A stretch of DNA of 63,436 bases, filler included, from Hyphochytrium catenoides (Eukaryota; Protista; Hyphochytriomycota), in assembly GCA_900088475.1 (NCBI GenBank). It is 9 parts of 9 records of this genome, joined end to end, with 100 filler letters (N's around TTAATTAATTAA, not from the genome) between each part and the next. Parts side by side here need not be neighbours in the genome. Positions count along the whole stretch, not along the records: positions 40,774 to 53,720 come from FLMG01000198.1; 8 more parts are not named here. One strand, given 5' to 3'. This document shows positions 40,774 to 53,720 of the stretch, piece after piece; the stretch's first letter is position 1; each line of letters opens with the position of its first letter. A program made the translations under genes and the position numbers. The notes under the pieces are model-generated. The model did not search any database. It was not told the origin of the DNA and saw only the letters and a list, made by a program, of their open reading frames with translations.

Positions 40774-40923
40774 TGGTGTATGGTGCATACTGGTTAGGGT
40801 GTCGGCATCAAAGACAGAGGTCCTGGGATTAAATCCCGGAGGGTACAAAACTTTTCTCCGGTATATTCAGACATCCCCCAATATTAATTCAAAGTGCTCA
40901 CCATCAAATGATAAAATCTAACA
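40774..40923 (+). mobile_element. 3' part of tRNA-containing LTR (family D), 5' end lost in the linker gap, inserted in a family-A LTR
   Basis: Matches the D LTRs at 47683-47938 and 51199-51444, ends in TCTAACA and is followed directly by family-A LTR sequence. Confidence 0.85.
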
Positions 40924-41044
40924 CGGGTTTATTAGGAATAGTTGGCATAGTCAGAATAGCTCTAGTTTATGGGACCCCAGTTGGGCTTATAAGTCGAGCA
41001 CTCTCATCTAATGACATTGTCCAATCATCCCATCTAATCCAACA
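40924..41044 (+). mobile_element. 3' portion of Copia LTR family A
   Basis: Near-identical to 52833-52954 and ends in TCCAACA. Confidence 0.85.
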
Positions 41045-41279: not shown

Positions 41280-42330
41280 CTACTCACCACCAACATCCTC
41301 CCTTCCCAGCGCCTTTCGAGCTATGTCGCAGTTCTTCTTGCGACCTTGCAGCGGATAGTCCTCGAACACATCGGACCTCCAGCGCCCCAGCTTCTTGATT
41401 GCCAAGGAGTCAATTCCGCCTCCGAACATGGCTGTCGCTCCTCCAATTCGTAGTGAATGCGTGGAGAAGTCACTTGCCTTCCGGCCGACCTTTGTGCTTG
41501 CGTCCTTGATGACCTTGGCAAGGTGCCCTCCTGATAGGTATCTGCCTCCCTTTTCTGAGACGCTGATGGCGCACTTGGAAATTGGGGAGTCGGGAAGTGA
41601 ACCCCACAAGTGGTGGACTCGTTTGACCACCTTAGCCGCTTAGACGGGACATAAGACATTGTCGCCTGATCGCTGGAGAAAACGTTCTGCTCCTCTGCCA
41701 ATCTGGTCACTCTTGGCTGAGCGTAGATTGATAGAAACGGTTGTTGCTGCTGCTTCTCCGCACTCGCGTCCGTCGTCATCAAGGAGTCTGAGGTCAGAGA
41801 GTCTAAGATCATGGTCGCTTCCCTTGCATCGGACAACTTCTGACTTTCTGAGGAGGAAGAAAAAGGCCAACAGGATGATACCCCATAGGAGTTGGTCAGC
41901 GGGTTGGCCGCCCCATAACCGGGTGGTGATAGAGGTGAGCATGGCGACCGTAACGGGCTGCCTCTTGCGAATGGGCGGGGAACTTCTGCGGATGCCGGTG
42001 AGGAGATGTCGGAGCTGAGCAGTGAAGGCGACCTCAACCCCGTGGTATTGGCGGTGATACCAGCGGATGGCGGACAACTTATTGATGAATGTTCCGTAAC
42101 AGTTGGCGCGGCCGGCACGGTTGAACCCCATGGTGCGGCAATAGACAAAGAACTGGCTAACGCGAGAAGTGTTCTCTGCGTGAGATCCAAGGAGCCAGGG
42201 TCCGTGGCCAAGGAAGCTACACCAGGCCGTCCACTGGTGCCAAGCGGAAGCATACTTTCGCTGGCTCTGGGTTGCGAGAGCGTTGAGCTGGATATCGTGT
42301 TCCAGAAGCGCCAGAGATCGCGAAATTGCT
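41280..42330 (-). pseudogene. Tyrosine recombinase of the DIRS/Ngaro element, frameshifted near 41640
   Basis: Catalytic set visible: FFLLRKSEV (R), SAKSDQ (K), HSLRIGGAT (HxxR) and GRWRSDVFEDY (W..Y). Confidence 0.88.
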
Positions 42331-42349
42331 CCGGGATGGGAACCCGGGA

Positions 42350-44497
42350 TCAGGTGGAACAGAAGTTAGTAAAGTCAGTCCGGCGATCAGGGCGCGACCA
42401 CACCCGGCTGCCGGCATCTGCGATATCATTGAGATCGCCAGCGATATGCTGGGCGCTACAGAAGAGGCCGTAGCGCACCTCGGCATAGGCCAATAGGCGT
42501 AGAAGAGTCTGGGCTCGAGGGTTGGAAGAGTAGCGTCGCCGATTCCACGACACAGCGGAGGTGTTGTCAAGCCAGAAGTTAATATGCACAAGTGCGCCCG
42601 AAGCTGCCTGGTGCCACGAACCACCCCACAAGAGGACCGCAAAGACGGCGCTCGAGAGTTCACGAACGTTGATGCCCAATGGACCCTTCGAGGACTCACG
42701 GAAGAGAGCAACTTCGTCAGGAGAGAACTGGACCTGTAGGTATTCCTTCGAGTGCGGATTGAGGACGCACAGGCCCTCATCCGAAGCGTCCATGAAGAGG
42801 TGGATATGTGGTCGGGACGACTTGACAAACAACTGGAGTGGAACACGATTCATGTGGCCCAGGAGCAGAACAGTGCGAAACCAGACTAAATCTTGAGATG
42901 CTATAGAAGAGAGCGCAATGCGTCCGTAGCGAGGAGCCACTTTGAGCAGAGAAACAAGACCTTGAAAGAAGGCGGTCGCAGCCGGGAAGCAGATGGCAAC
43001 GTGGCGAAGGCTACCAAGGAGCTTTTGAAGACTGGAGCGAGACACAGCACCCGCCGTAAGGGTGAGCGCGATGCGATCCAGGGCCTTGCTCACCTTATCC
43101 GCAGGCATGGATAGCGACAGGTCCGGGAGGTTCCAGATGAGACCCAAGGACTTGCCTTCCGTGAACCACGTTGTAAACTTTTTGTCGTTTAGTGCTTCCG
43201 GGCCAAGAACGTCCACCATTGCCGTGCAAAGTGCGAGATCACTCTCGTCCAAGCGGAAGCCAACATCCAACTCGACAGAGTTGTGGTCATCACGCCAATA
43301 GAGGGAGGTGAAGGAATTGGCATGCGCTTGTGGTTGGTGCTCCCACTGCGGTGAGGAGGCCGCGTATCGGCCTGCGATGGATTGCGCCGCGAGGTTATAG
43401 AAGCCCGGAGAACCCGTCCATCCGAAGGGGCACGACAAATCGATGACCAGGGCGTTATCTTCTGGCAACACGGCGGCGAACTTGCAGACGTCTTCCGCGG
43501 CGATAGGAATGTGCCTGAATGCACCGGAGACATCACCCGTCATCATCTTGGTGACGTGCGGCTTGGAGGAAAGTTCGACAACACGCCGCGCGATGGCTTG
43601 AGCAGAATCGTAAGAGACTGAAGGTACCTGGGAAGTGTCTGTAAAGTCGTTTACGGAAGCGTTAGCTGGAAACGATAGGTCATGGATGATCCGGCCATCC
43701 TCCGTCAAGGGAACGCCTGGTTTCTCCACTACGCCCAACGGACTGCATATGACCTCAGGCCCGCTGGAGGAGGTCTAAATCGAGCACGAGGTACCTTCCC
43801 TGGTCCTGTCCCTCCCGCACATGGCGACGAACCGTGGCGATATGCTTTCGAGCGGAGTCATGGTTATCTGGTGGTTGCGACTGCGGAGGTATAGCCTGAA
43901 GCCACGGCGGTCGAACCCCGTTAATAACGATGGAGTTCCACAAGGCAGAGGCAGAACCATAAGGGGAAGGGTGTGAACCGAGAATTAAAGTTCTATAGGT
44001 CGTGGATCGTCCTCCGTCTCCCCGCGAACCAGTTTGACTAACGCCACCAAACTACACCCGCTACGTCTGACATACTCAGATGGAACCGTCTTCATTTCGT
44101 GGTCAAGGGGAACGTTGGTCGCTGGAAGAGAAGAACTGGCCAGAGGCGGTAACTGGAGGTCATATTCCGCCAGTGCAACGAAAAACTGGTCCTGGATAGT
44201 GCATCGAGCCTCCGCAAGGCTCTCCTTGCGCGATGTAATATAAGCGTTATGGTCAGCTGTGGCCTCAGTGACGAAGGTGGTGGGATCTGAACACAAGTTG
44301 CTCTCAGCAAGCGGCTTGGACGATGGGCGGGCCTCCGCTGACGTCGGTGGGTTCGCCTCCGCTGACGTCGGTGGGTTCGTCTCGCCTTCCAGAATGGTTG
44401 TACACTTCCGGAGCATTGGTGTGCGGCCCTGTGGCGACAGCAGCACAGGTCGGTGCTTAGCAGGATTGTCCCTCCATTTCCGCACGTTGGCTAGCAA
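42350..44497 (-). pseudogene. DIRS/Ngaro reverse transcriptase-RNase H; frameshifted upstream of 43740, intact frame 43738-42350
   Basis: GRIIHDLSFP, GDVSGAFRHIPI, CPFGWTGSP and YWRDD (YxDD equivalent). RNase H motifs FMDASD, INVRELSS, LDNTSAVSW and HIAGDLNDIADAGSR. Confidence 0.9.
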
Positions 44498-44572
44498 AGA
44501 ATCCTCAAGTCCCGCATCAGGTGGCTCTTTCTTTCGCTTCCCCAGTGGCGTGAAGGGGCCACCGGGGCGCCA

Positions 44573-46015
44573 TCAGTTGCTGGACACTGAGACACTCAAA
44601 TCGCCCATCGCCTTGCGAAGGTGATCCCGGACGACTGCAGGCAGAGAGTCGGGCACAAAGTGAGCTCTACTGGCAGAATAATGGCATCCACCGCCGGCTT
44701 TGTCGGTACACCCTTTGGCTGAGAGATAGCGAAGGCACACGACTTGGTTTCCCTTCCTGGGTAGAGCTCGAAGGACCGCCTCCGGAATAGGAACCACACC
44801 TGGTTTGCCAACGCCTTGGCCGCCACGTGGCGGTGCTGTGGGTGGAACTGCTGCAGGTTGGGTAGAACGTTGGTGACGAAGAGTGATCCTTCGCTCTATC
44901 TCCATGAACGCAGGATCAGCTATTGAAAAGGCCGCAATGGCCTTCTCATTGGAAGAGTGCTCTCCAGTGTGGAGCCTCGAACGCCACCAACCCAGCCGAT
45001 CATTGAGCCAGATGACAAGCTCAACGAGGAACTCGCTCTCAGTCGAACACTCAATGACCTCTAGCCGTTCCAAGAAGGCCAAGGCACCAGTGACCACCTC
45101 CGCTGTTTGTAGGGTCCAAAACTCCTTGGCGAATATCTGGAGTCCTCGAACAGCCCGAATGATCTCCCCTAATGAGCCTGGTGGAGGACATGTAGGGAGC
45201 ACCGCAGAGCGTGCGTAGTCGTTCATGTGCCCTGCTTCGGCAGAGAGCTGACGCTCAAGGGTGAGAGGTCGAAAGTGCAAGACTGACAGCCTCTTAAAGC
45301 CGAAATCAAAGGTATAAGCCGCCATCAGGACCACGGGAAGCGCTAGGAACGTAACAGCCGGGTGGTGGAGCTGGAGGGACTCAAGTAAGGTGTGTGGATC
45401 CTTACCTCGGTGTCGTTCCGCCAGCAGCTTGCTGGCCACCTCTTGTTGCAGCGCACTCGGCCGGAAAAGTCCCTTGTCCTTCACGCCACGCTCGGTGGTG
45501 CTGGAGGCCGCTTGTTGCATCACAACTCGCGCTTCTTGGAGCTCCGCAAGCTTCTCCTTGAGGCCCGACATCTCCACTTGGTGCAGTTCCTGTTGTCGGG
45601 TTATAGTCGCGAGCATCTGCTGCTGGAAGGCTTGTTGCTGACTATTAGCTTGCAAGATCTGCAACAGAATCCCTTGCAAAACGTCTGCTCCGCCCATAAC
45701 TCCTGGTGACGTTGAAGCCATCGGTTGCGGTGACGCTGGTGGTACTGCAGCGCCAGGTGGTGCCGCAGTTAGTGGTGGTGGAGGTGGAGCCGAGGACGAT
45801 GCTGCTGCTTCAGGCATCCGGGCCGATGTTGATGAGATCGATGGAGGGCTGAATACCTCCTCGTCCTCACCAGTGATATCACTTTCATCGTCACTCTTCA
45901 TCACTTCGTCTGCTGAAGCCCCATCATCCTCGACTTCCTCCTGTGCTGCTAATGGTACCTTGGTACCACCCTTCTCAGCCGCCGCTGTTGCCTTCTTTCG
46001 ATTGCCCTTAGCCAT
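44573..46015 (-). CDS. DIRS/Ngaro gag-like ORF1
   Basis: 480-aa ORF with an acidic/Pro-rich N-terminus, a coiled coil and a C-terminal Cys/His knuckle (VCLRYLSAKGC..GCHYSASRAHF), directly upstream of RT. Confidence 0.8.
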   Translation of the reverse strand: MAKGNRKKATAAAEKGGTKVPLAAQEEVEDDGASADEVMKSDDESDITGEDEEVFSPPSISSTSARMPEAAASSSAPPPPPLTAAPPGAAVPPASPQPMASTSPGVMGGADVLQGILLQILQANSQQQAFQQQMLATITRQQELHQVEMSGLKEKLAELQEARVVMQQAASSTTERGVKDKGLFRPSALQQEVASKLLAERHRGKDPHTLLESLQLHHPAVTFLALPVVLMAAYTFDFGFKRLSVLHFRPLTLERQLSAEAGHMNDYARSAVLPTCPPPGSLGEIIRAVRGLQIFAKEFWTLQTAEVVTGALAFLERLEVIECSTESEFLVELVIWLNDRLGWWRSRLHTGEHSSNEKAIAAFSIADPAFMEIERRITLRHQRSTQPAAVPPTAPPRGGQGVGKPGVVPIPEAVLRALPRKGNQVVCLRYLSAKGCTDKAGGGCHYSASRAHFVPDSLPAVVRDHLRKAMGDLSVSVSSN

Positions 46016-47584: not shown

Positions 47585-47682
47585 CCTCCCCGCAGTTCCA
47601 AATGTCTGTAGGTAAGAGAGGTTGAGGGGTTCGATCCTGAGAGAGAGGATGGTCATATGGTAGGTTTGTTGGGTACTATTCC

Positions 47683-47938
47683 TGTTAGATTTTATCATTG
47701 GATGGTGAGCACTTTGAACTAATATTGGGGGGAGTCTGAATATACCGGAGAAAAGTTTTGTACGCTCCGGGATTTGAACCCAGGACCTCTGTCGATGCTG
47801 CCGACACCCTAACCAGTATGCACCATACACCAAACGTACACTTGACTAATCTCCGTTTTTGTTTATATACCAGGGGTTCTTCCCCTCTGCGTCGTCCGCT
47901 GTACACTTTTTGGTTTCAACGTCGATCACAGTTCAACA
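47683..47938 (-). mobile_element. Solo LTR family D (256 bp) containing a tRNA-like gene
   Basis: Minus strand TGTTGAAC..TCTAACA with a perfect 5-bp TSD ATTCC at 47678-47682 and 47939-47943. Confidence 0.92.
47759..47839 (-). ncRNA. 81-nt tRNA-like RNA within LTR D
   Basis: Acceptor stem GTACGTT/AGCGTAC plus discriminator A. T arm CTGGG-TTCAAAT-CCCGG (B box) and an A-box-like D region. TATATAAA about 30 nt upstream and TTTT just downstream. Confidence 0.75.
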
Positions 47939-47944
47939 ATTCCT

Positions 47945-48279: not shown

Positions 48280-48630
48280 TGTTGAGTGCTACCAGTGTTC
48301 GTTGTCAGTAGAGTAGTACAGTAGTCACTCTCTATACACACCGAGCTCTCAGGGACATAGACGTTACGGGTAGACCTGTGTTATGGGAAAGAGAGATCTG
48401 AGAAGAAAATTCCTGAAGAACGCTGGAGCAGCAGAGTAGGAGAGAGCGAAGATGAGGGGAAGCTGGGCCGAGCAAAAGATCTTGAGAGCAGACCAGACAT
48501 TCATGACTCAGTCATTCAGAGAAATCTCAATCATAGATCAATATCAAGTCCCTTTGTTATCGTTTCACCTAAATTGTGCTCATACAGAAGCTTCTTCAGG
48601 CATTGCCATCCAGCTCTGTAAAGTTCATCA
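48280..48630 (+). mobile_element. 5' LTR (family B) of a Copia element, followed by PBS GGTTATAGGCCCAC (48631-48644)
   Basis: TG..CA termini. The downstream GGTTATRGGCCC motif is the copia/Ty5-type PBS for the internal initiator tRNA-Met fragment, and gag follows. Confidence 0.88.
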
Positions 48631-48699
48631 GGTTATAGGCCCACACTCGCAGTTGGGCGTGACTGCTTGCTTCTCTTCGTCTCTCTTGAGCTGCTAGAG

Positions 48700-50129
48700 T
48701 GAGTTCATCCGCACAATATCGCTGTTCTACACAGCAAGGACCAGTATCCTATCTGGTCAAGCCGGGTACGAAGTTACCTGGATGAGTTAGACCTACTCGT
48801 TCACATTGAGGATGAGAGTCAGACACTGATGGCCGATGGCAAAACCCGCTCACCAGTAGGGATTTCACAGAGACAAGCAAGAAGAACTGGAAGAAGAATG
48901 ATCGGAAGACGATCAACAAACTGGTTCCCCTAGTTTCTGATGAGTTCCTGTCGCTGCTGGAAGGGCAAGAATGAGCGTACGCGGGATGGCTAAAACTGCA
49001 AGAGCAGATGAATGGAAAGGAAGGGGACAACGTCCTCAGGCGCCTTCAGGAGATCACCAACTCAAGGTTTGATTCTGGAGGCACCAACTCTGAGATCCCA
49101 CCTGTCCACCCTGGAAGAGAGGACAGAGGCTGACGATTTAAGGTTAATGACTCTAAAGAATATCTTCGAAAGGAGAAACAAGAAAGAGAACCAGCAGGAC
49201 ATTAATGAGACAATCCTCATATTTTCTTCAATTCTCCAAAGCCTCTCCGTCCTTTGGCTCGATAGTGAGCCACCTGTACGTCTTAGGGACTTCTTCCTCT
49301 CTGGCTGCAGATGAGGTCATCGACCGTATTATGGCTGATGAACAGAGAGGAGTGTCTAGCTCTGTACACTCTCCGGTTACTCTACCTTCTTCGGAGAGGA
49401 ATGCTCTCTCTGCCCCAGGGGAAAGGAAAAGAGAAGATCCCCCAGATCAGCGAAGACAGGAGGAGAAACCTGCGCGTGGCAGCAGGCAGTGCGGCATCTG
49501 CCGGAAAAAGGGACATAACAGCGCAGACTTTGAGAGCTTTCAGAAAACGCTGCTCGCAGGCCAGCTGGCTGGAAGTCTCGCCGCGTCCACTTGCAAGCTG
49601 CCGTTGGTACAGGAGCCCAGTAAAAGCAACACGGCAACTTTGTGCACTCTTAGCTGCTCTCCTATCCTCCACTTCTTCTCCCTAGCTTCTATCCAGCAGG
49701 CTGCAGCGAAGGCAAAAGCCGTCCAGAGCAGCCACAAATGGCTGCTAGACAGCGGATGCTCCAGTCACATTACTGGAGATCGATCACTCTTTCTCTCTTT
49801 CACTCCTATTGACCCTCTTCCCCTCTTTACCGCTGACAACCAGCCAGTTTTTGCCTCGAGTCACATTACTGAAGATCGATCACTCTTTCTCTCCTATTGA
49901 CCCTCTTCCTCTCTTTACCGCTGACAACCGGCCAGTTTCTGCCGAGGAAAGAGAAGCATAATACTTATCCCAGCTGCCAGTGGAGCTACCACTCCTCTCT
50001 ACCTGCCGAATGTGCTTTATGCGCCAGGCTTTCCGAAGCATCTTCTCTCTATTGGTGGACAAGGCATCCAAGACTCCTCTAGTGAAGCAGTGTTATTTAC
50101 CTCAATTGTAGCTTACTCTCAGTCCTTCA
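48700..50129 (+). pseudogene. Degenerate Copia gag-protease
   Basis: Gag-like WKKNDRK..WLKLQE, zinc knuckle CGICRKKGH, protease WLLDSGCSSHITG and LYAPGFPKHLLSIG. Contains stops, frameshifts and an internal duplication of about 90 bp (49763-49938). Confidence 0.85.
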
Positions 50130-50445
50130 TGTTCGAGTCACAGCTATGTGGCTTACAAGCTGGCAAGCTTAACTACCAAAGTTTCAGCTCCAAACTCCCA
50201 GTAGAAGCCGAGATAGAAGTATAGGAAATGTCCCTGTTTATATCTATGACTTATGGTGAGTACCCCAGGATACCTCCAGGACTGACTATTCTAGACAGGG
50301 ATATCCCTATAACTCCATATCCTAGACTATATTAGGAATAGTTGGCATAGTCAGAATAGCTCTAGTTTATGGGACCCCAGTTGGGCTTATAAGTCGAGCA
50401 CTCTCATCTAATGACATTGTCCAATCATCCCATACAAATCCAACA
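50130..50445 (+). mobile_element. Solo LTR family A
   Basis: TGTTCGAGTC..TCCAACA with perfect TSD CTTCA (50125-50129 and 50446-50450). Confidence 0.9.
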
Positions 50446-50626
50446 CTTCATTGGTCAAGGACATGCAAGTTAACCTCACAAGAACAAGTGAGACGTATGG
50501 GTTTGACCAATGGAACAGTTTAGTACTCCTCGGACACTGCCGATGCACGGGGACAAAGTGACTCTTCTCCTTCAAGACTAGCCGCAGCTACGAGCAAGCA
50601 AGAGCCTATCACCCTGTGGCACAAAT

Positions 50627-51198
50627 TGTTGGATTTGTATGGGATTTTGGACAATGTCATTAGATGAGACTGCTCTACTTATAAGCCCAATGGGGGTCCC
50701 ACAATCTAGAGCTATTCTGACTATGCCAACTATGTTGAGTGCTACTATGTTCGTTGTCAGTAGTACAGTAGTCACTCTCTATACACACCTAGCTCTCAGG
50801 GACATAGACGTTAAGGGTTCACCTGTGTTATGGGAAAGAGGGATGTGAGAAGAATTTCCAGAAGAACACAGGAGCAGCAGAGGAGAGAGAGATGATGAGG
50901 GAAGCTGGGCCAAGCAAAAGATCTCGAGTCCAGACCAGGCTCTCAGGACTGAGTGATCATTCAGAGAAGCTCCACACACATCAATACCAAGTCCCTTTGT
51001 TGTCATTGCATCTAGATTGTGCTCATACAGAAGCTTCAGGCATTGTCACCCATCTCTGTAAAATTCATCAAACTATTCCTAAGAAAACCCTAAGACATTC
51101 AGTAATAGAGAGATCCCTGCCTAGAACAGTTATTACTGAAGGTATTCCGGGGTACTGACCATAAGCCATAGATATAAACAGGGACATTTCGTTTGCTT
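50627..51198 (-). mobile_element. Inverted family-A LTR interrupted by a family-B solo LTR and by the TRIM
   Basis: 50627-50732 and 51071-51198 are consecutive reverse-complement pieces of LTR A. Confidence 0.85.
50733..51070 (+). mobile_element. Solo LTR family B
   Basis: TGTTGAG..TTCATCA with perfect TSD AACTA on both sides. Confidence 0.92.
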
Positions 51199-51287
51199 TG
51201 TTGAACTGTGATCGACGCTGAAGTGTACAGCGGACGACGCAGGGGGAAAATCCCTGGTATATAAACAAAAACGGAGATTAGTCAAGA

Positions 51288-51368
51288 GTACGTTTGGTGT
51301 ATGGTGCATACTGGTTAGGGTGTCGGCATCAAAGACAGAGGTCCTGGGTTCAAATCCCGGAGCGTACA
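51288..51368 (+). ncRNA. 81-nt tRNA-like RNA in TRIM 5' LTR (candidate self-encoded RT primer)
   Basis: 7-bp acceptor stem, canonical T arm/B box GGTTCAAATCC, variable loop AGGTC and TATATAAA at 51258-51265. The anticodon domain is enlarged and non-canonical. Confidence 0.75.
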
Positions 51369-51444
51369 AAACTTTGCTCCGATATATCCAGACACCCCCC
51401 AATATTAATTCAAAGTGCTCACCATCAAATGATAAAAACTAAAA

Positions 51445-51458
51445 TGGTGTACGCTCCG
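51445..51458 (+). promoter_or_regulatory. Primer-binding site of the TRIM
   Basis: Starts with TGG at the LTR boundary and is the reverse complement of CGGAGCGTACA+CCA. Confidence 0.85.
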
Positions 51459-51666
51459 AGCGATTTAACTCGGGCAATATAGTGAGCCATTCGGTTCTGT
51501 GACCATTAATGACCATCACAGTTCCATTTGAATCTAGAGCTTACAGAGTTCTCTAGATTCCGGGGGAGTGTTGAACTGTGATCAACGCTGAAACCAAAAA
51601 GTGTACAGCGGACGACGCAGAGGAGAAAATCTCTAGTATATAAAGAAAAACGGAGATTAGTCAAGA

Positions 51667-51747
51667 GTACGTTTAGTGTATGGTGCATACTGGTTAGGGT
51701 GTCGGCATCAAAGACAGAGGTCCTGGGTTCAAATCCCGGAGCATACA
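51667..51747 (+). ncRNA. tRNA-like RNA copy in TRIM 3' LTR
   Basis: Same sequence as 51288-51368 with two G-to-A substitutions. Confidence 0.65.
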
Positions 51748-51750
51748 AAA

Positions 51751-52420
51751 CGCCCCCTTCAACTCGTCCACTCCGATGTTGGCATTGTCAATACACTTAG
51801 CCTTGGCGGTCATCGTTACTACGTGGTTTTCGTCGATGACTATACTCGTCGAGTTTTTCTGTATCTCATGAAGAATAAGAGTGAGGTCATCACTCACCTC
51901 GAAACCTTCATCAGATGGCTGAGCGCCAACAAACAGGACTTAAAGTTCAACGTATTCGGATCGACCGAGGTGGGGAATACTGCCCAGAGCTCAGAGGCTT
52001 TGAAGGAGTATTGCAAGACACGTGGCATTCTACATGAGCTTACAGCTCCATAATACAGTCCAGCGCAGAACGGAGTTGCCGAGCGACGCCAGAGGACTCT
52101 TGTGGAGTCTGCCCGGTGCATGCTACATGCCGCCAAGCTACCGCCCTCCTTTTAAAGTGAAGCTTTGTTAACGGCTGCATATGTAGGTAATCTCTCCCCA
52201 ACAAGCGCCTTACATGGAGCAACTCCCTATGAAAAATGGTTCAATGCCAAACCGGACGTTAGTCATCTCCGTGTCTTTGGTCTTGCCTATGCACTCGTTG
52301 GGTACCCAGACAACTCAAAGGCCTATCGACTTTATGACAGAGAGAGTGGTACCATCATTGAGCGTAGGGATGTTGTGTTCGCTGAGGGGGAATTTGGTTC
52401 GCTACTTCAAACCTCGCCTC
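51751..52420 (+). pseudogene. Copia integrase core, degenerate
   Basis: PLQLVHSDV, YYVVFVDDYTR, PAQNGVAERRQRTLVESAR, TPYEKWF..PDVSHLRVFG and VGYPDNSKAYRLY, with stops and frameshifts. Confidence 0.9.
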
Positions 52421-52628
52421 AGCTGCGTGACTCTGTACTCCATCTCTTTGATATACTTAGCGAGGAAGACAGCTCCCTCCCCAACAATCCGACTCGTAAA
52501 GGGGATTCTGATCAACATATGTCCATCCAAGTGCCCCCCCCCAACGAATACCTCGCCAAACAACCTCTGAACCAGCAGACACCGTCAGCTTCGACCCTTC
52601 ACAAGAGGGAGTTGGAGCTGCGGGGAGG

Positions 52629-52954
52629 TGTTGGAGTCTGAGGGCCCAGCTCTGTGGACTACAAGCTGGCAAGCTTAAACTACCAAAGTTTCAGCTCTAA
52701 ACTCCCAGTATAAGCCGAGATATGAAGCAAACGAAATGTCCCTGTTTATATCTATGGCTTATGGTCAGTACCCCGGAATACCTTCAGGACTGACTGTTCT
52801 AGACAGGGATTTTTCTATGACTGAATATCTTAGGGTTTATTAGGAATAGTTGGCATAGTCAGAATAGCTCTAGTTTATGGGACCCCAGTTGGGCTTATGA
52901 GTAAAGCACTCTTCATCTAATGACATTGTCCAATCATCCCATACAAATCCAACA
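52629..52954 (+). mobile_element. Full LTR family A (326 bp) flanked by an upstream PPT and a downstream PBS
   Basis: GCGGGGAGG|TGTTGGA...TCCAACA|GGTTATGGGCCCAC, with a 7-bp terminal inverted repeat. Confidence 0.9.
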
Positions 52955-53434
52955 GGTTATGGGCCCACACGTCCCCCAGGACTCGGAAACTTGTTCTGAG
53001 GTCTCTGAGCCAACCACTGGACCATTGCGATCCCGAAATGTCCCTGTTTATATCTATGGCTTATGCTGGGAGTTTAGAGCTGAAACTTGGGTAGTTAAGC
53101 TTGCCAGCTTGTAGTCCACATAGCTGGGCCCTCAGACTCCAATACCTCCTCGCAGCTCAAACTCCCTCTTGTGAAGGGTGGAAGCTGAACATTCAACAAT
53201 ACCGACAATTCAGCTTCGATAGATCCGTGTTCACCTCCCGATGACCGTTGCGAAAACCTGCGCGTTTGCCCAGACAGTCTGGTCTACAACAACCTCTTGC
53301 CCAACCCCAGCAGCACGAGCAACTGATTCCCCACAACAAGTACCTCCCTCCCGCATTCCGCTTTTCAAACGCCGACTTCGACAAAAAGACTCTATTTTCT
53401 CCATGGCTAATCACCTTGGCAACTCCTTATCACC

Positions 53435-53720
53435 CAATGAACCCCGAACGATAGAGGAGGCTCTTTCTGGACCGGATGCGTCGGAGTGGAACGCCGCTAT
53501 CAGTGAAATGGCATCTATGGAACAACACGACCTCTGGGAACTCGTTGAACGTCCTTCAGGAGCAAACGTCATTGGGTGTAGATGGGTGTTTCGCGTAAAC
53601 TATGGAAGTGATGGCACCATCGATCGCTATAAGGCATGACTCGTTGCTCAAGGCTACAAGCAGAAACAGGGGATCGATTACAACGAGGTCTTCGCTCCAG
53701 TGGTCAGCTATGAGTCCGTC
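53435..53720 (+). pseudogene. Copia reverse transcriptase N-terminal part, runs into the linker gap
   Basis: EPRTIEEAL, WELVERP..VIGCRWVF, YKA*LVAQGYKQKQGIDYNEVFAPVV. Confidence 0.9.

Follow-up and report, generated by a model that had tools for sequence, protein, structure and literature searches.

A miniature LTR retrotransposon of apparent Helenus type with a primer-binding site complementary to the tRNA-like unit of its own LTRs

To our knowledge, all tRNA-primed retroelements borrow a host tRNA, the only known escape being Tf1-like self-priming from the element's own mRNA. Tf1 primes with the first 11 nt of its own mRNA, released by an RNase H cut and lacking CCA; as the element supplies the primer sequence, Tf1 and Tf2 are independent of host tRNA. 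In Cassandra, the primer-binding site (PBS) matches the host initiator tRNA, and the 5S RNA of the element has no known link to priming. Outside the retroelements, mascRNA receives a CCA tail after cleavage by RNase P and RNase Z. Helenus is known from Pucciniales, some Agaricomycetes, six animal phyla and Selaginella and is thought to have arisen several times; the fungal and plant members have 5-bp duplications and are linked to copia (PMC10886601). Its origin has been modelled as insertion of a SINE into an LTR, and complementarity between LTR tRNA and PBS, asked for in section 3.6 of that study, was found in none of the families (Kojima 2024, PMC10886601). The preliminary description of the present locus, which took such a primer/PBS pairing to be probably undescribed, was right on this point, and our literature search for the primer and PBS strings returned only unrelated primer sequences.

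The window analysed here, the whole stretch of 63,436 nucleotides of DNA, contains a TRIM-type miniature LTR retrotransposon of about 0.6 kb overall with a tRNA-like unit in its LTRs (Table 1). Judged by its sequence, it fits the Helenus/TRIMp3 kind in every structural respect, having 1) two LTRs and a short non-coding internal region, 2) LTRs containing a tRNA-derived sequence that includes boxes A and B, 3) a PBS (TGGTGTACGCTCCG) at 51445 and a PPT (GGGGGAG) before the 3′ LTR, and 4) a 5-bp target duplication (GGAAT at the solo LTR). Sequence homology to Helenus families is not required for this assignment, because Helenus probably arose several times; in a comparison limited to k-mers, five 10-14-mers of the TRIM were absent from the published Helenus consensus file. 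While the position of PBS and PPT at the ends of the short internal region, the 5-bp duplications and the size are shared with Helenus, two differences are evident: the host is oomycete-like by its TE proteins, whereas Helenus has been reported from fungi, animals and Selaginella, and the PBS can pair with the CCA-extended 3′ end of the LTR tRNA-like unit, a match that was found in no Helenus (PMC10886601). The TRIM thus appears to be the first Helenus-type element seen with a PBS matching its own LTR tRNA-like unit. Like Cassandra (PMC10886601), it has a small gene of Pol III type within its LTRs, but the LTRs of Cassandra carry 5S and those of the TRIM a tRNA-like unit. Self-priming of the Tf1 type was rejected for the TRIM, since its PBS is complementary to the 3′ end of a distinct tRNA-like unit, to which a CCA must be added post-transcriptionally. 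The degenerate tRNA-like fold with intact acceptor and T arm resembles that of mascRNA, which differs in being a vertebrate lncRNA product of unrelated sequence with no known role in reverse transcription.

Table 1. Features of the miniature element and its surroundings (positions along the window)
Feature	Position	Strand	Description	Basis
5′ LTR of TRIM	51199-51444	+	246 bp, begins TGTTGAAC	repeat and alignment results
TATA box TATATAAA	51258-51265	+	−30 to −23 of tRNA-like first base	sequence read
tRNA-like unit of 5′ LTR	51288-51368	+	81 nt	ARAGORN call and fold
T-run	51373-51376	+	5 nt past tRNA-like 3′ end; TTTG in TRIM copy	
Internal region	51445-51568	+	124 bp, non-coding	high depth in public contigs
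PBS TGGTGTACGCTCCG	51445-51458	+	complementary to ...CGGAGCGUACA + CCA	
Imperfect extension of pairing into T arm	51459-51474	+		
PPT-like purine tract GGGGGAG	51562-51568	+	abuts 3′ LTR	sequence read
3′ LTR, truncated	51569-51751	+	cut 4-5 nt past its tRNA-like unit	
tRNA-like unit of 3′ LTR	51667-51747	+	acceptor G>A	
Solo LTR, same family	47683-47938	-	256 bp, TG...CA, begins TGTTGAAC, ends TCTAACA	
Second tRNA-like call	47758-47840	-	within solo LTR	ARAGORN
Fourth LTR copy, 3′ part	40774-40926	+	cut by piece edge; T loop and acceptor decayed	
Copia-A, decayed Ty1/copia	48280-53720	+	holds TRIM and other LTR fragments	
Copia-A 5′ LTR	48280-48630	+	TGTTGAG...TTCATCA	
Copia-A protease	~49727-50053	+		
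Solo LTR, Copia-A type	50733-51070	+	5-bp duplication AACTA (50728-50732, 51071-75)	
Copia-A integrase core	51757-52395	+	two in-frame stops	tblastn with copia polyproteins
Copia-A RT	53439 to piece edge	+		
Repeat Z copies	50141-50445, 50628-51198, 52678-52961, 40930-41044	both orientations		
DIRS-like retroelement	41321-46015	-	three long ORFs (480, 462 and 310 aa)	

The layout that had been proposed, an LTR, a 124-bp spacer and a second LTR, was borne out, except that the second LTR is cut off by the copia integrase junction. The end of the 5′ LTR was set by two further copies in the window, both of which stop at ...TCTAACA. In the TRIM copy the terminus reads CTAAAA, whereas the other window copies and most public-read copies have CTAACA and hence the usual TG...CA ends, with nearly all public-read copies carrying C at 51443. 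In the alignment of the 5′ and 3′ LTRs, 167 columns match, 7 are mismatched and 9 are gaps (96% identity), with a single indel of 8-9 nt. Only short ORFs of no likely meaning were found in the TRIM, the longest having 89 aa. At a microhomology of 7 nt, ACAAAAC (51745-51751), the 3′ LTR passes into an integrase gene that belongs to an unrelated copia; from 51745 on, public contigs of another repeat align, which upstream read integrase and not LTR. This junction therefore represents an illegitimate join at the shared heptamer.

An 81-nt tRNA-like sequence had also been claimed for each LTR, and the claim stood. Besides being called by ARAGORN, the unit folds with a 7-bp acceptor stem including one G-U pair, a discriminator A and an intact T arm (CTGGG/TTCAAAT/CCCGG) with a perfect 5-bp stem and a canonical 7-nt loop. 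However, the D and anticodon arms are degenerate, with a 7-nt duplication (TGGTGTA/TGGTGCA) inside the D region, and ARAGORN needs a 4-base anticodon to make the call. The Rfam tRNA model RF00005 gave no match to the unit, even in a 121-nt search, its sole Rfam similarity being that of the T arm to mascRNA and tmRNA, and the fold z-score was −1.7 to −2.1. A canonical tRNA gene was rejected on the basis of the 4-base anticodon, the missing RF00005 score and the weak fold z-score.

Sequences resembling a Pol III gene surround and occupy this unit. The TATA box TATATAAA is kept in all three copies spanning that position, box B is GGTTCAAATCC, and box-A-like TGGTGTATGG and TGGTGCATACTGG were found as well; the acceptor stem, the discriminator and the T arm are intact, in contrast to a disrupted box-A/D region. 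The T-run reads TTTT in two other window copies and in nearly all public-read copies (T at 51376), and as it directly follows the unit, a Pol III transcript would be a small RNA and not genomic RNA. The genomic trailer after the unit is AAAC rather than CCA, exactly as had been noted. Among the public-read copies, the one common variant in the unit is A/G at 51352 (37%), which interchanges TTCAAAT and TTCGAAT, both canonical T loops, and the last 14 nt showed no variant at 10% or more. RNase P, RNase Z and the CCA-adding enzyme all accept an acceptor/T-arm minihelix as substrate, so the proposed maturation of the LTR RNA is feasible; the features for it are present in the LTR unit, the processing itself being predicted.

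Examination of the sequence after the 5′ LTR confirmed that the PBS TGGTGTACGCTCCG is perfectly complementary, at all 14 positions, to ...CGGAGCGTACA plus CCA, the chance probability being 2.4e-7 for the 11 non-CCA positions at fixed register. This 14-mer is present once in the window, and its only near-matches there are the tRNA-like units, on the opposite strand and with TTT instead of TGG. In all window copies the TGG lies outside the LTR, the canonical layout for a CCA-tailed primer, and no variant at 10% or more was seen at 51445-51505 among public-read copies. The looser complementarity that had been described as continuing into the T arm proved to be real but weak: CCTGGGTTCAAATC pairs with CCCGAGTT-AAATC at 12 of 14 aligned positions with gaps (p ~0.036 by shuffling, for the extension alone). 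The extension segment by itself forms a hairpin (CCGAG/CGATTTAA/CTCGG) from 51456, and a fold in cis of 51340-51480 pairs the tRNA-like 3′ half with the PBS region in a duplex of ~28 nt (z = −4.7). Positions 15-18 of the PBS are AGCG, whereas pairing with the LTR tRNA would need GGAT, and no public-read variant above 10% makes them match. In Ty1, the primer sequence is not known to be inherited by the progeny; if the same holds here, this mismatch counts for little.

Rather than being complementary to the PBS, the 5′ acceptor strand (GTACGTT) is similar to it. It was also noticed that positions 8-14 of the tRNA-like unit, TGGTGTA (51295-51301), equal the first 7 nt of the PBS (51445-51451). 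One public contig fuses the tRNA-like 5′ strand straight to the PBS (joint 51648>51445), a joint that looks like a deletion variant between short repeats. The public reads also hint at subfamilies in which the leader and the 5′ strand differ in sequence.

The solo LTR of the same family at 47683-47938 interrupts a copia pol gene within its final codons, beside the RNase H C-terminus, and is flanked by a perfect 5-bp target duplication, GGAAT (47939-47943 and 47678-47682), which shows that the TRIM family has been moved by an integrase. With this duplication of its own, it was rejected as the 3′ LTR of an autonomous copia, and no autonomous gag-pol element carrying an LTR of the TRIM family was found in the window. 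The family copies diverge by only 4-7%. To assess abundance, Logan contigs of four public runs were aligned to 51100-51900; the TRIM was present in runs of organism A and of soil, rhizosphere and plant metagenomes. One run of organism A yielded 918 contigs of the TRIM region and another 353, and the summed contig depth in these runs was hundreds to thousands of times that of single contigs. The depth of the internal region in the public reads was about 1/3 to 1/2 of the LTR depth; therefore, LTR-124 bp-LTR units are common and no local accident. The unit with a complete 3′ LTR recurs in a 409-nt soil-metagenome contig, which covers 51356-51751 and then continues as normal LTR (TTTTCTCCGGTAT). 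The TRIM family is thus mobile and of high copy number in organism A.

Searches elsewhere returned no relatives. Two IMG/VR scans for further family copies or relatives and a GTDB scan with the LTR tRNA pattern gave no match, a GTDB scan with the PBS 18-mer gave only 8 chance matches in bacterial MAGs, and protein queries with spurious sense and antisense ORFs across the LTR, as well as an exact look-up of one window ORF, gave none. Contigs of the best DIRS homologues, including a Globisporangium splendens locus, contained no relative, tRNA or similar PBS.

From the observed anatomy, mobility, abundance and complementarity, we infer Pol III transcription, processing and the identity of the priming RNA as follows. 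With a probability of about 0.5, the LTR unit and the primer belong to the same tRNA lineage, a host tRNA being the regular primer and the LTR RNA at most a contributor. The TRIM would be a Helenus-type non-coding element moved in trans by copia-type proteins, as its 5-bp duplications suggest, and its tRNA-derived unit would be a putative Pol III gene by the TATA box, box B and downstream T-run. A CCA-tailed RNA ending in ...CGGAGCGUACACCA would anneal directly after the 5′ LTR and prime as in ordinary tRNA-primed elements. On the most economical reading, the regular primer would be the host tRNA of that species and the LTR would carry a degenerate paralogue of its own primer, probably retained above all for its role as a Pol III promoter or small-RNA unit; since its acceptor/T-arm minihelix is intact, the LTR RNA would remain able to prime and may contribute to the pool of primers. 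The tRNA-like sequence must derive from a host tRNA species, which makes that species the more economical candidate for the primer. Since the LTR segment derives from a host tRNA gene or SINE, and acceptor stems of tRNAs evolve slowly, a host tRNA with the same 3′ end probably persists.

Such a tRNA was sought in a JGI metagenome scan with a pattern of acceptor GTACGYT/AGCGTAC, discriminator A and standard T loop, the base after the pattern being required not to be A to skip LTR copies. No eukaryotic-type canonical tRNA with this stem was found in that collection, which is apparently poor in the organism; the matches were a tRNA-Ile(GAT) of prokaryote type, its CCA encoded in the gene, and one non-tRNA chance match. 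The blank is weak, because no mutated LTR copies were returned either. The tRNA-Ile(GAT) lies at 1133-1208 of metagenome contig L001, where it adjoins a tRNA-Thr(GGT), and has the acceptor GTACGTT/AGCGTAC and A73. It was rejected as a host candidate, being prokaryote-type, with a stem match imposed by the pattern and the rest unrelated.

Three points weigh against a host tRNA as the regular primer: 1) the JGI scan returned no host tRNA with this acceptor stem, a weak negative, 2) a unit serving only as promoter should keep boxes A and B, yet the box-A/D region is disrupted and the intact parts are those on which RNase P, RNase Z, CCA addition and priming depend, and 3) the occurrence of the same species in LTR and primer needs a cause, no such match having been found in the Helenus families (PMC10886601). 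In a second reading, plausible but less probable, Pol III would transcribe the LTR unit, and the product, after trimming by RNase P and RNase Z and addition of CCA, would serve as the main or only primer, the PBS having adapted to it. It would accommodate the 14/14 match of the PBS including the CCA, the weak complementarity that continues into the T arm and an intact acceptor/T minihelix in an otherwise degenerate unit. With a TATA box at −30 and a T-run immediately behind the unit, the Pol III product would be a small RNA, and the polymorphism at 51352 retains a canonical TTCRAAT loop. The LTR copies of the family, numbering hundreds to thousands, could swamp the primer pool, the only nearby copia 5′ end uses a different, non-TGG PBS, and the metagenome scan again bears on this reading, having yielded no canonical tRNA with the acceptor stem sought. 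On the other side, PBS positions 15-18 are unmatched, a point that is neutral if primer sequence is not inherited, and with copies differing by only 4-7%, the intact acceptor stem may just be young. It is accordingly put forward only as a tentative idea that the TRIM might be uncoupled from the host tRNA supply and from the primer choice of its helper.

We regard as improbable a third reading, that the match is a functionless coincidence or by-product, in which the LTR by chance received a SINE or tRNA gene of the primer species, or a primer enriched in particles was captured, leaving the unit as a promoter or relic. This would agree with the origin model of Kojima, insertion of a SINE into an LTR (PMC10886601). 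There being a few dozen tRNA species, an occasional same-species match is expected across very many windows; moreover, the unit has no score with the Rfam tRNA model, and the extension past 14 nt reaches only p ~0.04. It is opposed by the 3′ acceptor strand, which is kept though a promoter does not need it, and by the trailer with a T-run, which suggests a gene-like copy and not a captured mature tRNA; in addition, no such match was reported among Helenus families (PMC10886601). Two further origins were tried and rejected: an LTR tRNA arising as a read-through copy of the primer would lie antisense downstream of U5, and an origin as proposed for tRNA SINEs from strong-stop DNA disagrees with the absence of CCA and of antisense U5 after the unit. 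Highly improbable, finally, is a cis or inhibitory role, in which the tRNA-like 3′ half would pair with the PBS in genomic RNA as a cleaved self-primer, an annealing mask or a source of PBS-blocking 3′ tRNA fragments: the ~28-nt cis duplex and a TATA box that would start the transcript at the tRNA-like unit, placing it in R/U5, agree with this role, but the PBS TGG pairs only with an added CCA and the genomic trailer is AAAC, a cis primer without CCA does not fit a TGG lying outside the LTR in 3′ and solo copies, and the first mRNA bases, in contrast to Tf1-type cis priming, are identical and not complementary to part of the PBS.

If the LTR RNA were indeed the primer, an element encoding its primer would constitute a third solution to priming, and primer choice would be a property of the parasite rather than of the host tRNA pool or the helper element. 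This would explain the retention of small Pol III genes in the LTRs of TRIMs such as Helenus and Cassandra, and would bear both on the compatibility of TRIMs with helper elements and on host control by 3′ tRNA fragments aimed at primer-binding sites. Even with a host tRNA as the regular primer, the conservative reading, TRIMs bearing tRNA sequences would gain a new host group (oomycetes, by TE homology), and the LTR tRNA and the primer would for the first time be of the same species.

The TRIM is embedded in other transposable elements. Copia-A, the decayed element that holds it, was rejected as a member of the same family, having other LTRs and another PBS: its 5′ LTR is followed by GGTTATAGGCCCAC, not a TGG-type PBS, which we take to resemble a sequence complementary to the anticodon stem-loop of a tRNA, the arrangement in Drosophila copia, Ty5 and fungal Helenus. 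In protein searches, the integrase piece had a best identity of at most 58%, mostly 30-50%. The Copia-A-type solo LTR is nested in an LTR-like repeat, Z, which begins with TGTTGGATTTG at ~50628, and the same Z copy also received the TRIM, between ...GTTTGCTT and CATATCTCGG; with Z copies in opposite orientations, the TRIM is framed by long inverted repeats. Of the three family LTR copies with a readable flank, two lie in or beside Z, which could reflect a target preference or mere nesting in a TE-rich region. A further neighbour is considered DIRS-like because several homologues of it are annotated with a Tyr-recombinase domain; its 480-aa and 310-aa ORFs had no Pfam match, and the best named matches of its 462-aa RT ORF (42350-43738, minus strand) were from Phytophthora, Pythium, Globisporangium, Nothophytophthora and Aphanomyces at 36-52% identity. 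By this homology of TE proteins, the host is of putative oomycete affinity.

A hairpin was also noticed just upstream of the TATA box in each LTR copy (51240-51257, 51619-51636 and, on the minus strand, 47880-47900). Its stems change in pairs between copies (CAGGG..CCCTG, AGAG..CTCT and GGGG..CCCC), and the hairpin may be a conserved U3 structure.
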